From assembly GCA_973895155.1 (NCBI GenBank), contig OZ316898.1, positions 2,976,480 through 3,040,479 on the forward strand: a stretch of 64,000 bases of DNA, read 5' to 3'. The notes under the pieces are model-generated. The model saw only the letters and a list, made by a program, of their open reading frames with translations, did not search any database and was not told the origin of the DNA. The position numbers and the translations under genes are program-made. Below, piece by piece: positions 3,101 through 13,208 of the stretch. The DNA is from Marsupella aquatica. Lineage: Eukaryota > Plantae > Marchantiophyta. How positions within the stretch are numbered: position 1 is the first letter of the stretch; the number at the start of each line of letters is the position of its first letter.

Positions 3101-5733
3101 ATCACAGTCAGGCAGACAGAAGATGCATGACCGTCATTTTGCAGTGATACTGAGGCTCACAATCCAGTTTATAATTTGCAGCACTGATGAATAGGACTTA
3201 CCAGCATTGATAAGGTTTTCGGTAGCCTTGTAATCAATTCGGTAAGGTGCTGTAACATTCAGGGCCTCTTTCTCGCTCGCTCCAATTGCGCACACTACCA
3301 CACCAGCGTTTCCTATCGCGTCTTCTATTTCTTCCGAATTCTCTAGATCAACTTCCACCAGGTCCACTCCTGGCTCTTTCTTGGCAGACCCCAGAAATCC
3401 GAAGAGTTTCTCAGGCTGTACGAAGATGGTTCACATTGCACCGATGTCAAGAAGTTGCTTTGTTTCCAAATTTAGGTCCACAAATACTGTAGTTTCTTGA
3501 ACCGACTGAGGGGAAGAGATTGATAGACTATCCGAGCAAGAGCGAGTTCTGCGGTCCTCATTGCTAAATGGAGTCTTAAGATCGGACAAATTTTGAAAGC
3601 AAATGATCTCTTCTCGATTCTGAGCAACAAGTTTGTTGTCAAGCAAAACCAAAACCTCATTGTAGAGGTAGCATTCTCTTAATTCATAGAAGAAAGTAGA
3701 GAACGTCTCGAAGGAGTGCCTCAACAAGTTCTAATCTCTTGAAATACAGATTTTCCTTACATCCGATCCTTGCTGAGACATGAGTAACTGATCTCAGCTC
3801 TACAACTCAATTCCTGGTGGCGTGTTCAGCATTATCCTGGAAGTTTCTGGAATCAGAGATGAGCCAACAAATTCAGTGGAAATGATAGATGCTAACTTAC
3901 ACTGAAGTTCGCCCACAGATTGGGTTTCGTCTCCGGCTTCTCTTCGGGCTTGTCTGCTTCGTCTCCTCCTGCAGGCTTCCCTGCTGCAAACTGCCAAGCA
4001 GAAAACGCATTTTTGGCGCAACTCAGTTCGACTGTGAGCATTGGTGGGACCCCTATTTTTATTACTGTATATTCCGACCCCCACTCCAGATTTTGAGGGA
4101 GGAAGAGGGGGATGATGGTAGAAGGGTAGCAATTACAGGTCTGGCAGAGAAGGGAGCCGGAGGTTGGAACTAGTTCAAGGAGAAACACGAAACTCAGCGT
4201 ACAAACATACTTGAATCTGCAATCCCTGACGCCGGAGGTCGGGGGAAATTTATCTTTGGATTCAGGATTTATTACCTCCACAAGGAACTGTGCCCTCTCA
4301 ACATCTCGCACACCAGCGCGGACCGTGTATCCAAGCTGCACCAGCTCCCTGTTATGCAGCAGGGAGACACCCACGGAGAGCACAGAAATGAGATTTGTCG
4401 ATTACGCCACTCTTTCGGAAACGACGTTCAGGAAATGTGCTTCAATTCGAGCAAATCCAAGCTGAAAGGTTAACATCGTGAAGGAAGTACCTGACCGCTC
4501 GTCGACCAACTTTGCCAGTTGCTCCAGCGACGAAGACTACATTGCTATCTTTGCGGCGACTTCGTTGGCTTCCTGGAAGCTTTACAGTGCCAGGGAGCTT
4601 CTTAGTGCCGGAAAGCTTAGCAGTCCCGATCTTCTTAGTCCCGCGCCCTACAGGGGTCTCTTCGTCATCCTCGCTGGCTGGGTCTTCACCTTTCTTCAGC
4701 TTGAGCGAACCGGGTAACTTGAAGTCTGGTAAGAAGAGAACCGGAATGTACCAAACCCCCACATTTTCCCTTGAGCAATTACAACAAAATCCAACATGTA
4801 CCATAATTCTAACCAACACCATCGCCATCACAATGGACAACGGTTTCAAGATGAGTGATTGATGTCTGCAGTGGAGTAGACGGCCGGAATAATTAACGCC
4901 TACGACACACAGAAAGACAGATAGAGCACGAGAAGTGGGAGAAGACTGGTGCTTGCTAGGATTCATTCAGCGGGATAACGGCGTTTCCCAGGATTACTTC
5001 GGCTGGTTGCCACCAGGAGTTTCTCTGGAGTGTTTCAACCCTCCATTGGCGTGCAGAAGTTGTCTCCACTCCAAATGCAATCGTTTACCTAAGAACAGAG
5101 TCCCATGGACCTACAAATTTCATTTTGCAGCTCTTAATTGAAAAGTGTTCGCCAAAGATTCTGGAGGTGCACTGGACATCCTAACGTGCCCAATTCAATA
5201 GATCACTACTCTCGGTGGCAGATTGCCTTTGTCCATCCGTGATTAAATGCTTTGGGGGCACCTGTGACAAAAATGCTTTGGAGGCAATGGGTGTCAGTAA
5301 TTTATATGGCCAGAGAAGTTGGGAATTATCAGTCAGAAGTCAATCTGTTCGGAGAGACTGGGCATCAGCGATCAAATTGCCCGGAGATGATGCGGTTACA
5401 CGTAGAGAAGCGGAGAGGCGGAGACATAGGCGCACAAAGATAAGCTCTTCGTTTCATTTTCGGGTTCAACATCAACGCCCAGCGGGATAGGAAAACTGAC
5501 TCACCCAGACCAGATTTCTGAGCCTGCACTTCAACAGCAGAAGTCTTCCTTTGAGGGCGCAATGTCATCCTCTTCTCCACGCGGAATTGCCATTGTTGCT
5601 TCCCAAGAGACGATGGAATTCGACACACCCCACCGAATCTTTTCATCCCACCAGCAACTCTGCAGCCAAGCTGATAATGGGGAGCGACAGCAGCACCATG
5701 GCTGCGTCGCACCAACAGGACTTGGGACTCCAT
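174..5733 (-). CDS. TIC62: TIC62-like chloroplast NAD(P)-binding (atypical SDR) protein with long Ala/Glu/Lys helical insert; 3'-partial
   Basis: Exons (minus): 5733-5505, 4725-4491, 4348-4276, 3990-3901, 3415-3202, 2927-2846, 2723-2651, 2476-2366, 2221-2024, 1900-1847, 1695-1433, 893-174, all GT-AG and in phase. Motifs VFVAGATGKVGRRAVRELVQLGYTVRAGVR, CAIGASEKE, PYRIDYKAT, LFWGVLVWK, IVRPGGMEKPTDTYKETHN, GGQVSNLQVAEL, EAVAETTAPL match Tic62; the last visible exon ends PTPLSPYA, the start of the Tic62 FNR-binding motif; Arg/Ser-rich transit-peptide-like N-terminus. Confidence 0.92.
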
Positions 5734-8700
5734 CGACGAAAACTCCCCTCAGAAATTCTCGTCCAACAACCAAGCAGCCAGGCTCGTTTCTCGCTCAATT
5801 GCTCTGCTGGAGCTGCTATTTCATTCGGACCATACCACCTTCCAACTTCACTGACTCCAACGCGTTCACATCTGGCAGCCAGTGCAAGGCTCATGCACAA
5901 CACCATCCACGGCCTTCTCTCGGATGGAGCTGAACCCAACTAAGAAATTTTGAGCTGGGGCGAAATCTCCAGCGGCAACATCCATCCCCCGAAATCCACA
6001 GTCTGCGTATCACTTTCGGGTTGTGGGCCAGCAAACGAGAAATAGATATAGTGACGTGGCTGGCTTTCATGGCTCTGGGTGCAGGTCGGAAGCCCCGTAT
6101 TGGGTCTCAAAATGAGTACGGGTGAGGCTAGGATCGCGAACTGAGGACCACGCATCTGCAGCAATCAGGGAATTCAACGACCCAGTGAGTTTTAACTACT
6201 TTACAGACTACAGTACTGCCTGCGTTGATAGGAGTCTTTCCTAGGGTTATTTTCTCTTGGGAGCTTACTATTTACTCTGTATTGCCTACAAATTCTTTAT
6301 TTGAAGGGGAAAAGCCTTGGAGTAAGGTAACTGGCTTGCAGGTGTGAATAGCCTCTCGTTTGTTTTTACTTAATTTAATTTCTATAACAATGAAAAGTGT
6401 GACCCGTTCCCAGTTCTTCAGGCTTTTTGGCCTTTGGTTCTCCCCTTGATTGAGTCTTTTGCATGTGGGATCATGCCCCCTAGTTGGGAATCTCTTGTGT
6501 TTTGGCAGTTTGAACCTCTTCTGTTTTGGCAGTTTGAAGTATAATTTGTACGGTGCAATACATATTGAGTTTTATTGAAACACTACATATTTACAAACCA
6601 GAGCAAAACTTCCTAGAGGCGAGTTTCTCTGTACACAAACCACCCTCAAAAGTGGGTTCAGGCAAAATTCTAGAGACTGAAACAAAAGGAGTAATTGTGT
6701 GCAGGCAGGGACAGGGATCCGTCTCCATGAATGTTTCTAAAGCTGGGAGGTACAGCAGTCTAGTACGATAGGGCTGTCAGCAGTTGACTTGGGGGAAACT
6801 CCAGGGTCTATGTGCAAGCCCAATTTTCAAGTTCGTGCAAAAAGTATTGTAACCAGGTCAGCTCCTGGAGGTCACTTTGGTCACAAGGAGATTGGCTGAA
6901 TCTTCTTCCGCCCCTCCTTCACTTTACGCCCTCACCTTCTCTCGCACTACCTTAGCGCTGTAATTTCCTTGTATGCCTCGAACTTTCCTTGTGTGCCCCT
7001 AATGGATGTACTGTTCCTAACGACCCTACCTTGGGATACAGGACCAAGTTTGGGGATCACAGCACTATTGACTCGTCATTCAGTCAATAACTTGGTTCTC
7101 ATAAAAAAATGTGTAAAAACTGGTCAACTCTAGTACAAAATAAATATGTAAGCAAGCGAGGATTTGACACTAGATATCCGGAGGTGTAAAATAAGCTGCA
7201 ACGAAAAGCGAAATTATCCTGTACTTAATCCATTCTATTCGGTTACTAACCTTATATGAAAACAGAGATTGTGATAAAAGTTTTGAAAGATTAGAAATGA
7301 GGAGATCTGAGCAACGTGCAGGGAGAGGAGGATTCATTATTGCTCTGTGTTATGAACTATCCAGCATACCTTACCTCTCAGCCACCCCATGTGGCAAAAG
7401 CACAGCTGACACATTGAGATGGCCTGAAATGGGGCCCTGTAGGGCTGCTAAATGTGTATGTTCCTCACTGACCTGGTCTAAGAGCAGATATGTGGGAATC
7501 AATACAACCTGGATCCTACCAGGATGCTACTGGAACCAGATTGAATTGCCTGCGGTTCGACGCAGAGGTACTCCTCTAGTAAAAAGTCGTAGATTAGTAC
7601 ATGGGAATCAACTCAAGGCACACCTAGGATTGGAAGACACTCGAAAAGTGCACACACATCAGCCACACACGTCAACACAAGGAAACAATACCAGGATTAT
7701 CAGCTTATGGATAGGATGTATGTCTTACATGATTGCTCAACTCCCTACAATAAGGTATATACCTCCGCAACTCATCTTCGACTATCCCCTACTTTTGCTC
7801 AAGCTACCGGTTTCTGAACACTTCCTCTGATGGGATCCATCTGATTTGACCGATAGAAAAATGTACACAATACCTGAAGTGGACCACAACAACAACACAA
7901 AAATGATCATCCAGCAGTCACACATACATTGTATCAAAGCAGTCAAGAAGGTCATCGAACAGTATAGTCTGCAGGAAGCGAGAAAGAAAAGACAACATCA
8001 AGCAATTCAATCTCTTCATGTTAGAGTTCGCAAACTCAAACTACAGAATGATCATCGGCGACTACAACTACAATTTAAAGTCCAACAGCTGAACACCAGG
8101 TCAGCAAAAATCTAGCGCTGTTACAGATATTGACCAATCACATTGCAGAGAACGGCAGTAGCTCGTGACCAAGACAGAAATCAGTTTCATTTGTATATAC
8201 CAGAGAACTTCGATCACTCTTTTTCCTTCATCACAAGCTTTGTGATAGCAATTTTTTTATTAACGGTGAGTAGAAGAATGCCTTCCTTGAGGCAAAGAAT
8301 ACTCTAGGCAGCCTCTAATGATAAAACAGCAAAACTCAGCTCTTCTAAGTGACACACTGATGGACTTCCTACATTCACTCAATGGCTCAATGTATTTCGA
8401 TCCCGTTCCTTAACCAATGAGTGCAGGAGACTGGCAGCCGAAGCTCAACTGCTCCACATCGAAGATTACTGCATCCATAACAATCTGGTGCCTTGAGCAT
8501 CTTTGACTGCAACATAGGGTGTCAGGTTTTCCAAATTTAAATCTTACAATTATTAACACAACCATGGTATTTATAGCATTGTCTACGACAAATCCACACT
8601 AGCAATAGATGCATAGAAATTAATTCATTTTCATTTACTTTCACGAAAGCCTCGCAAACTCGAGCTCTCCGGGAATTTCTGAGAGCAACTCATCAGGCGT

Positions 8701-8924
8701 GGGATAAGATATCCATCCAACGAAAAACCTCTGGTAAACAATAACATCCTAGCTAAGTCTTATTGAACAACTAGAATTACCGGCAATCCACTATTGAGCC
8801 TTAATTGAGAACTAGGAGCGCATCAATTCACTTTCTACTTTACATGCCCCTCTATGATGTTGCCTACCCTCCCATCCCGATTGACCTGTCCCATCATAAG
8901 TAGATAAAGGAACCAAACCAGCAT

Positions 8925-8996
8925 CTATGAGATGGCTTGAGTAAGAATATGGGTAATAGATCCAGCCTCCTCTTGCTCTTTTTCAAACATAGTATC
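8925..8996 (-). CDS. AP1S: Duplicated alternative terminal coding exon of the AP-1 sigma gene
   Basis: Pyrimidine-rich acceptor (ttatcttcctcctctgcag), then 72 nt in phase 0 encoding DTMFEKEQEEAGSITHILTQAIS*, colinear with exon 9144-9073 ([23 protein letters not shown]). Confidence 0.75.
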   Translation of the reverse strand, partial: DTMFEKEQEEAGSITHILTQAIS

Positions 8997-9072
8997 CTGC
9001 AGAGGAGGAAGATAATGTGAAAAGCCAGGTTTCAATATCCTCTCACACAAAGTGTACTAACTAAGCACTACT

Positions 9073-11825
9073 CTACTTTGTGGCTTGTGCAATCATATTG
9101 GAGAGAGACCCAGCTTGCTCCTTGGCATTCTCAATCAAAGTGTCCTGCAGAAATTACCCAGTAATTGTAAAGCGTTATTGTCAAATCATCCATAAAACTA
9201 CCACCCAACCAAATCTGCTAAAATGGTAGTAGCGTGTGCCATAAAGATACAGTACTATGAACGGGACCTATTCTTTCAGCCTGAATAGCAACCGGGCATT
9301 TCAGTGTGAGCTTTGAGAATCCAGACGACTACAAACTAAAATTCTGTGCCACTTACTAAAATTTTGTTGCCACGGACCAGTTTCAGTTACAATCAACATC
9401 CACATCATTACACAGGTTCATAAAAAATGAAGGAGATTCGCAGGAATTAACACTATTTAAAATTACCTGTGCTGCAATTACGCGTGCAACTGACTTCTTA
9501 CTTGACTCTTGCAATTCTCCCGCAATTAACACCTCGTCGAGTATATAGTAAGCCTTCAATAACAACAACAGTTAGCCTTCGCTATGTGGTGACAATAGAT
9601 TCTATTGCAGGTCCACGAAGTTCAAAACAACAACCTCTACAACCAGAAAAGAATAGTATTTGAGGTGTCGGTGCTGTATCTCAAAGTCACCTCTCACCAA
9701 TTGGTTCCCAATAGCTCACGAATATTGTTAGGTGCTCCGACTACTTTGCTAGTTCCAACGTCGTTCACAACAAGAAAGCAAAGACACGGTCTTGTCCACC
9801 CAAACACTTCAAGAATCAAAGTCTATTTGGTATAAACAACGCAAAGATCAATCTTTTACGACGGAGTAAGTAGATCCTATCGAAAACCAGCTGCTTCAAC
9901 AGTCGCCAATCCCGAGAATCCGTAGCCAAATCGCTGCCCCAACATTAAATAGTTCAAAAAGGCTGAGAGTCGGTTCGAGGCAAACCTTGTGAAAGTTGAA
10001 GATGAGATCTAACTCACAAACCTGCCACAAAACCAAAGGATTGCCCGGATGCATGAGATCATATCAAAGCTCAGCTCTCGAGACATGTGAATGCTTGACA
10101 ACGGTCTTGGTATACAGAGAGCACAATAAAATCACCATTCAGAAATACACTCATAATATCCAAATGATCCACAGAGCAGTTACTTAGTTTCCATAAGGGT
10201 AATAAGAGCAGTTGTTAATTGTGTTAGCATATAATGGACCTGGATTTCAAACTTTGAGCAGAACCAGTGCATTTAACGCCACTGGCAACCTGGCTCCACC
10301 GACAGACTGTGGATACTAAAGGTGTGCAGTCATTAAGCCCCATTTGAGATGACCTTGATTACAGATATTAGTGTATAGACGGTACAGCTTCAGGTGATTC
10401 CCCTCTTCAATCGAAATTTGAGTCAAACCAACTGATAAGTCCTTGTTAAAGATTCCACTCTACCATTAAAAATGTTACTAACTTTCCAGCAAATTCAACA
10501 GACTGATCAACAACAAACAGATACTATTCATCGGGTAGAACCTGCACCATCTCAACAGCCTGAAGCGGCGACAAGAAGAAGAGATGCTTACATTGCCAAA
10601 ATATCGATCCAAAATCTCCACAAAATGATGAATGATCTCAAGTGTCTCCAATTCATTGTCTTCCGCATCAATACACATACAGAAGTACAGGCTTGCATAT
10701 CTGTGTACATGGTGGAACAATCAAATAGATTACAGAGGACCGAACCTCAGATCTCAACTCTCCATTTTCATCCAACCTTGATAGGAAGCCTGTTCAGCAT
10801 CTCTAAAGTATAATTCAATGGCGGTTGGGTCGCAAGCTGAACAAATTAATGTGTTAAATGAAAATTGAAACACTCTAGCACTTCACATGGGGGGACTCCA
10901 AAACTTCCGTGGCAGTTAGGGAACTTGTTTCCCTATGAGGTAAGTCCATTAGCAACTGTCACAGATAGTACGACTTAACAGCGAAACAAGAAATTAAGGA
11001 CTGATGAACTATCTGTGTGAACCAGTGAATGAAACCCACCGTTTATAAATGACTTTGAGACCCCGCCATTCCACGAAGTTACAAAGCTTGGAACCTCTGC
11101 TCAGGATAACTCCACTCAGCTCGCGGATGACCTAATGGCATTCATAGAGTAGAGGTGGTGAGAAAACCTCAATCTCTTCTCGGCCAGAAAGATCGCCTAA
11201 GACCAGCCGTTTGTCCACAACTTTCAAGGGGAACAACCAATCTTTAGAGCTGAGTAGCTTTTCTATTGGACCAGATATGTCCACCCTGGAGAACCCTTAG
11301 TCATGATAAACGAAAAGATGCTCAAGAACTTGGATACATAAAATATCTTTAACAAGACTGTTACACGAATCAACCATTGCACATTTCAGGAACAGCAACA
11401 TCCTCATGTGTGAAAAGGGCTACACAAGCGCCAGAAACAGTCACCACAAACAACGACACAATGCTTCTCATGCATTGTCGGTGCTCGACTCTTGATTACC
11501 TTTGTCCTCTCTTTCTGCGTATAAGGAGAGTACCACTTCGTCAACCTAACCTTTCCCTGCCGGCTTATCAGCAATACAAACTGAATCTGCCACACGTAAA
11601 ACACAAATAATAAGAGATCGTTCCCTCATCGGCAGTGAAAATGTTGATCAGTTCAATAACAATTGACTATAGTCATGTTCATTTCGTAGCAACTATCCGG
11701 GGGGAGACAATGTGCAATCACATTCAACTTTCGATTTCGGTGACGATTACCAATACCAATAGTACACCACACGGCTAAAAGAAACAACCTGAATACAAAG
11801 AGCAGGTCTCAGAATTACTCACCAT
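9073..11825 (-). CDS. AP1S: AP-1 clathrin adaptor complex sigma subunit
   Basis: Exons: 11825-11823 (ATG), 11586-11500, 11131-11040, 10700-10592, 10021-9986, 9553-9467, 9144-9073. Protein [20 protein letters not shown]...[10 protein letters not shown]...[55 protein letters not shown]...[23 protein letters not shown]. Confidence 0.96.
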
Positions 11826-11977: not shown

Positions 11978-12203
11978 GCGGATCGATCGAATGATGGCTC
12001 CAATAGATTGCACTCAGCGGATTGATCGAAAAAAAAACTCAAACAGAGCGCACTCAGGCGGATTGATCGAAAAAAAAACTCAAACAGAGCGCAGTCAAGC
12101 GGATTGATCGAACCAAAACACCGACAGAGTAACTCTTCAGCGGATTGATCGAATCCGTCGCCTCTCTACATTACAATCCACCTGGTCAAGCGGATTCTGA
12201 ACG
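11978..12203. repeat. ~41-bp periodic array with conserved core GCGGATTGATCGAA, upstream of the AP1S start codon
   Basis: Cores at ~11978, 12017, 12058, 12099, 12140, 12190 (first and last degenerate). Confidence 0.85.
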
Positions 12204-12481: not shown

Positions 12482-13208
12482 GTATAGGCTAATGACGGTT
12501 TGGTGGGGTTATTAGGGTAGCATGTAACCCGTGACTAGAAAGTGACTAAATGTTGATCACTAGAAAGTGACTAAATGTTGATCACTAGAAAGTGACTAAA
12601 TGTTGATCCACAACAGGCTGGAAGTTTTAGAAGTTTTAGTTTTTCTGAGCTTTGTGGGAACAGGTTTCAGATTAGAACCCCAGCCCGAAGAGTCATTATC
12701 ATAAGTAATCTTTTGCCCGGAATTCAGATAGCAATTTTAAACTATAATGGAGGTTTGGGTAGACGTTCCAGCCTGAACACTTCTCCCAAAAAAACTCAAA
12801 AAAGCTTCTCAACTGTGAGATCCTTTTCACTTTCTGGTCACAAGGTTACCCGTTAGTAATCCAGACCAGACTGCTATAATCCTATACACAATGCTCTCAC
12901 ACTTGGGGAGTTATTTCCCAAAATTCTTGATGGCAACAAACTTTCTCATACTAATAAATTTGGTATACAAGAAAGGTTATCCATGTGTAACCATGTCTAG
13001 AGGTACTTGCTATTTCCATAATCTCTTGCTCGGAAAGTCATGATTGTTAAATTTTCTCCGTACTCTAGGATTGGTCTGGGCTGGGGTTCTATTCTCAATG
13101 TTGTTCCCAAAATGCTCAAAAAAGCTTCCTGGTTTCCGCCTATCAACCTTTTTTCACTTTCTGGTCACAGCCTAGTAACCCCATGCCCAGACTGTCATCA
13201 TCTCATAC
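12482..13208. mobile_element. Cluster of three short TIR elements (MITE family A, GTA...TAC ends)
   Basis: Copies at ~12482-12703 (inverted), ~12742-12887 and ~13060-13208 share cactttctggtcac cores and ~35-bp imperfect TIRs (gtata..atgac.gtttgggctggggtt.tag); related to 23216-23846. Confidence 0.6.
12534..12608. repeat. Perfect 25-bp tandem repeat x3
   Basis: actagaaagtgactaaatgttgatc three times, inside a family A copy. Confidence 0.95.

Follow-up and report, generated by a model that had tools for sequence, protein, structure and literature searches.

The closest known arrangement to the one reported here is that of KRAS, where exons 4A and 4B are homologous alternative last coding exons (PMC9882654). 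The AP-1 sigma gene analyzed in this work resembles KRAS in having two related terminal coding exons in tandem with their own stops, here named 7a and 7b, and in the encoding of C-terminal tails of ~20 amino acids on an unchanged core domain. In both genes, inclusion of the upstream copy leaves the downstream copy as 3′UTR, and one form is dominant. The two cases differ in that both junctions of KRAS are documented and conserved for >400 My, whereas the 7b junction was unobserved here. Moreover, KRAS 4A behaves as a cassette exon and has a donor of its own, whereas 7a is without a donor and the choice would lie between two acceptors, and the duplication described here occurred in situ, in a plant, and is lineage-restricted.

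Tandem exon duplication giving mutually exclusive exons was reportedly described by Kondrashov and Koonin in 2001 and by Letunic and colleagues in 2002, mainly in animals. With this class (see also PMC6071210) the locus shares a local single-exon duplication, equal length and phase, and a moderate divergence between the copies; the classical pairs are, however, internal and often under the control of competing RNA structures, whereas the present pair is terminal. No inverted repeats around the 7a and 7b acceptors were found in a repeat search. Mutually exclusive exons, strictly defined, are internal and carry both an acceptor and a donor, with exactly one of them being included; 7a and 7b fall outside this definition, as they are terminal, 7a has no donor, and the sequence after the 7a stop is unspliced in the mRNAs. 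Small-subunit diversity giving AP-1 complexes with different properties is also described for vertebrates, where the sigma1A, B, and C paralogues AP1S1-3 diversify the AP-1 small subunit (PMC4944158). These are separate genes, whereas a single gene could here vary at most the last 23 residues of its product.

The AP-1 sigma gene and its tandem terminal exons

The stretch of DNA analyzed, hereafter the window, is 64 kb long and carries on its minus strand a complete AP-1 sigma gene of seven exons (Table 1), which codes for the small subunit of the AP-1 vesicle-coat adaptor. The product gave a full-length domain match to Clat_adaptor_s (PF01217), with exons 2, 3, 4, and 6 matching in Pfam and the last exon lying beyond the end of the model. 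The exon peptides are identical to Sphagnum AP1S at 148 of 159 residues and to P0279, the closest relative among the matches listed, at 151 of 159. On such protein similarity the species is placed as a bryophyte. P0279 was reached from exon 4 by way of plant AP1S proteins and the Sphagnum cluster of which it is a member, and led in turn to L003, a spliced mRNA contig from a JGI sample of a related species, which carries P0279. Transcript contigs were also available from X1, the one RNA-like run listed for this DNA, which comes from a close relative (organism A), carries a label that is itself a guess, and behaves as RNA; organism A differs from the window by ~7% in the untranslated part. L009 is a 5.1-kb syntenic genomic contig from another, more distant relative.

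Table 1. Features of the AP-1 sigma gene in window coordinates, with the identity of the 3′ part to L003 (alignment A1).
Feature	Positions	Strand	Evidence and remarks	Identity to L003
Exon 1, end (start codon only)	11823..11825	-	Sequence; X1 joint 11586/11823, GT..AG	
Intron 1	11587-11822	-	Begins straight after the ATG; 236 nt	
Exon 2	11500..11586	-	Pfam PF01217 positions 2-30; X1 joints	
Exon 3	11040..11131	-	PF01217 positions 32-60; X1 joints 11129/11498 and 10700/11040	
Exon 4	10592..10700	-	PF01217 positions 62-97, E 5e-13; X1 joint 10019/10590	
Exon 5	9986..10021	-	L009 peptide identical	
Exon 6	9467..9553	-	PF01217 positions 111-135; donor GT 9466-9465; X1 joint to 9144	
Exon 7a, coding part (canonical 23-aa sigma1 tail and TAG)	9073..9144	-	X1 joint 9143/9466; L003 mRNA	94%, 5-nt gap near stop
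7a-7b spacer, 5′ part	9027..9072	-	Weakly conserved; 31/45 identical to L003	69%, gapped
Polypyrimidine tract and CTGCAG acceptor of 7b	8997..9026	-	27/30 identical to L003	90% over 30 nt, no gaps
Exon 7b (diverged 7a copy, 23 codons and TAG, same register)	8925..8996	-	Within the 3′UTR of the 7a-type mRNA	81%, no gaps
Rest of 7a-type 3′UTR, at least this far	8331..8924	-	X1 contig record 1 unbroken 9147-8331; many gaps to L003	54-76% in seven 72-nt blocks after 7b, gaps in each

Among the AP1S models deposited for Sphagnum, several begin with unusual N-terminal extensions that replace the normal start, possibly the result of gene predictors overlooking an ATG-only exon of this type. Upstream of the coding region, the 5′UTR contains tandem copies of a ~45-nt unit (a 'cgatcaatccgc...' motif, then a T run) at 11980-12170. 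A 73-nt stretch of this repeat is replaced by 32 other letters in the transcript of organism A, so that its copy number or sequence varies between relatives. Three head-to-tail copies of a ~25-nt unit ('gatcaacatttagtcactttctagt') are found farther upstream at 12540-12640, likely in the promoter region.

An earlier note on this DNA had described two 72-nt phase-0 stretches at the end of the gene, each with a CTGCAG acceptor and with a TAG at the same position, and our translations of the two match it exactly. Both are in phase 0 because exon 6 closes on a complete codon. The in-register comparison reproduced the hand-counted identity of 47/72 nt and 9/23 amino acids without indels, as well as the 76-nt spacer between 7a (9144-9073) and 7b (8996-8925) and the unrelated flanks, which outside the CTGCAG are identical at 19 of 40 positions upstream and 14 of 40 downstream. 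On either strand of the window, the second-best ungapped 72-nt match to 7a reaches only 38/72, and the likeness of 7a and 7b is therefore beyond chance. A repeat search picked up the two independently, as a direct repeat of 71 nt with 72% identity and 148-nt spacing. Read from the sequence, pyrimidines occupy ~22 of the 28 positions upstream of the 7b acceptor and ~17 of 28 upstream of that of 7a. Thus, 7a and 7b form a tandem homologous exon pair of equal length and phase, each member with an acceptor and a stop. A coincidental likeness or an error of assembly is effectively refuted by the distance to the window-wide maximum, by contigs with identical DNA from two studies (four independent runs), and by the same arrangement in L003.

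The sigma1 tail and the use of 7a and 7b in transcripts

The tail encoded by 7a is the streptophyte consensus, almost invariant in a comparison of 35 AP1S proteins of streptophytes, charophyte algae and flowering plants included, and is the C-terminal extension past the ~142-aa core that is typical of sigma1 and missing in sigma2. The nearest PDB chains are sigma1A (1w63) and sigma1C. The tail is a peripheral extension, since the solved AP-1 cores align with P0279 only up to residue 146, and both the AP-2 sigma chains (142 aa) and one sigma1C structure construct, which is without the tail, end at 142. AlphaFold models the sigma1 tail as a helix with modest confidence (pLDDT 54-76). Exon 7b retains the first residues of the tail, EAGS[I/L] at its center, and the spacing of hydrophobic residues, and is altered at the near-invariant canonical residues K8, N16, A19, T22, and K23. 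Our searches found no description of a function for the sigma1 tail, and we know of none.

The X1 contigs jump all predicted introns with GT..AG ends, including that from 9467 to 9144, which confirms the predicted gene structure and shows that 7a is used. At the joint of exon 6 and 7a (9143/9466) the contig depth in X1 is 338. The contig of X1 record 1 (911 nt) runs uninterrupted from the first bases of 7a through the stop, the spacer, and 7b to 8331, with 28 inserted letters relative to the window. In L003, too, exon 6 is spliced to 7a, and the mRNA continues through a 7b copy 70 nt past the stop. The earlier note had proposed that one gene makes two sigma1 isoforms by a choice between these acceptors. 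A junction from exon 6 to 7b (9467 to 8996) was present neither in the X1 contigs nor in L003, the transcript assemblies of two relatives, and in both exon 6 is joined to 7a. Of that proposal, a second isoform is plausible and was unobserved in these assemblies; an old duplication of the terminal exon, with a constrained 7b that is intact and has kept its acceptor in L003, is supported. Because both assemblies carry 7b unspliced within the 3′UTR, the use of 7b is minor at most in those samples. Assembled contigs lose rare variants, and what is excluded in those samples is consequently a major 7b form, not a minor or conditional one.

In protein searches, with the exons queried one at a time, the 283 AP1S relatives fetched include no 7b-type tail, for which the earlier note had proposed a search of proteomes, nor did the two AP1S searches list any protein of the window itself. 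A 41-aa open reading frame over 7b gave zero protein candidates in a search whose length rule puts full-length 7b isoforms out of reach. Metagenome scans with degenerate 7b coding patterns gave first no match and then four chance bacterial matches (L005-L008), in a collection that is also without L003. We also considered, and rejected, an intron within the 3′UTR that would pair a donor at the stop of 7a with the acceptor of 7b; it would be a mere 79 nt long, with a weak donor and an out-of-frame junction, and the joint is absent from the X1 listing.

Distribution and conservation of 7b

The contig L009 represents the same locus, since its downstream gene matches the window at 3421-3200 on the same relative strand. 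This neighbor of AP1S is an NAD_binding_10/TIC62-like gene (window 3200-3421, syntenic with L009:4686-5123) with 66% identity over 76 aa and conserved orientation. The 7a peptide of L009 is identical to that of the window, and the third codon positions differ at 15 of 24, which makes L009 a much more distant relative. Nothing similar to 7b or its acceptor was found downstream of 7a in L009, and a second copy of the terminal exon was also absent in Physcomitrium patens (L004), Sphagnum (L001), and a transcript of another plant (L002). From these comparisons the duplication appears limited to one lineage, or lost elsewhere. Its absence from Physcomitrium, Sphagnum, and the syntenic L009 points to 7b as a young, lineage-restricted feature and no general plant solution; the near-saturated synonymous divergence between 7a and 7b makes the duplication old relative to the split between the window and L003. 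The suggestion in the earlier note that 7b may stand in for missing sigma1 paralogues is not supported, in view of this distribution and of a second AP1S-like spliced contig in X1 (record 4). The latter covers window 10590-11130, is ~92% identical in exon 4, and is a paralogue, a homeologue, or derived from a second species in the sample.

L003 contains an intact 7b orthologue at 702-773, with 23 codons and TAG in the same register. Both copies are thus conserved as open frames in L003, the one other species in which the letters of 7b are readable; the organism A contig spans the same stretch. Between window and L003, 7b is identical at 58/72 nt and 17/23 amino acids, and 7a at 22/23 amino acids. 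Together, the acceptor and 7b show 17 mismatches in 102 gap-free nt, against a background of 172 mismatches in 511 (34%) and 11 gap events in the remaining 3′ region (binomial P ~1e-4), and of the 559 possible 102-nt blocks past the 7a stop they rank first. These nucleotide comparisons are good evidence that 7b is under constraint. The main mRNA has a long 3′UTR of at least ~740 nt, which contains several other short blocks conserved in L003, e.g., at ~8840-8825 and ~8700-8685.

Whether the constraint acts on the protein was addressed with tests on only 69 nt from two species, and thus on very few sites, and the results are suggestive only. Between species, omega (Nei-Gojobori) is 0.08 for 7a and ~0.37 for 7b (Fisher p 0.06); the comparison of 7a with 7b gives 0.24 (p 0.01). 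The earlier note had held that selection kept the copies; omega values below 1 for 7b between species and between copies agree with this in direction, at very few sites and with a p of 0.06 for 7b. The omega of 7b is 4-5 times that of 7a, as is expected under decay as well as under a new role. Only 3 of 25 differences between 7a and 7b fall at second codon positions, for which the naive P of 0.004 becomes an estimated ~0.08 when the synonymous changes of 7a itself are allowed for. The six replacements in 7b between window and L003 (positions 7, 9, 15, 16, 20, and 23) spare the hydrophobic positions 3, 4, 11, 14, 17, 18, 21, and 22, which are common to 7a.

Interpretation of the distal copy

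The tandem duplication of the terminal exon is real, lineage-specific, and under some constraint. The account we favor, and to which we give an even chance, is that the distal copy of this lineage-specific duplication has been retained for minor or conditional use as an alternative terminal exon. In a restricted lineage, this bryophyte AP-1 sigma gene underwent a tandem duplication of its last coding exon; the proximal 7a encodes the very conserved canonical tail and is the terminal exon of the main mRNA, and the distal 7b, 76 nt beyond the 7a stop, lies within the 3′UTR. The distal copy has kept a pyrimidine-rich phase-0 3′ splice site, an open frame equal in length to that of 7a, and the position of the stop. 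Since nothing past the 7a stop is better conserved between the species than this splice site, frame, and stop, the most likely mechanism would be that the distal acceptor is used occasionally or conditionally. The exon 6 donor (9466) would then pair with the AG at 8997, 7a and the spacer would leave in a 470-nt intron, and the product would be a sigma1 in which the last 23 residues give way to a related tail, probably a helix, that has the hydrophobic spacing of 7a and different exposed residues. The use of 7b and any effect on AP-1 are inferred. More tentatively, 7b may be regulated, so that one gene would give AP-1 two small subunits differing only in a 23-residue C-terminal helix and thereby change a partner or cargo interaction of the otherwise nearly invariant sigma1 tail; this further step we regard as somewhat doubtful.

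Rather unlikely, to our judgment, is that 7b is an unused relic, never or no longer recruited and slowly decaying in the 3′UTR, with its intact frame in two species owing to luck and a short divergence time. Such a fate would agree with the presence of only 7a-type mRNAs in X1 and L003, with the deviation of 7b from near-invariant tail residues, and with its absence from L009, Physcomitrium, and Sphagnum. Nor is the preserved frame in itself demanding; in a random simulation an open frame with its stop outlasts 14 substitutions in ~33% of cases, and the probability of 102 gap-free nt is ~0.13. Evidence against a decaying copy comes from a block of 7b and acceptor that is conserved significantly above the surrounding UTR and ranks first there, from an omega below 1 in both comparisons, and from a polypyrimidine tract that exceeds the 7a tract in strength and has hardly changed between the species. 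We consider it improbable, and more so than decay, that the block was kept for a noncoding reason, as a 3′UTR element acting in stability, localization, or polyadenylation, or through regulated splicing that alters the mRNA and not the protein. The strongest signal is indeed nucleotide conservation, which does not require translation, and the 3′UTR is long with further conserved blocks; but the substitutions tend to avoid second codon positions and hydrophobic residues, the frame has retained its length and the position of its stop, and no inverted repeat or competing structure was found near the two acceptors.

If 7b is unused, the locus would provide a dated example of a duplicated exon lingering in a 3′UTR. 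If 7b is instead a regulated terminal exon, plants would have a case of homologous last exons in the style of KRAS4A/4B, and one that offers a natural handle on the role of the sigma1 tail. A second, different tail kept in the lineage as a splice option would be a natural experiment on the function of that tail and would add a rare plant case to the isoform diversity arising from exon duplication.
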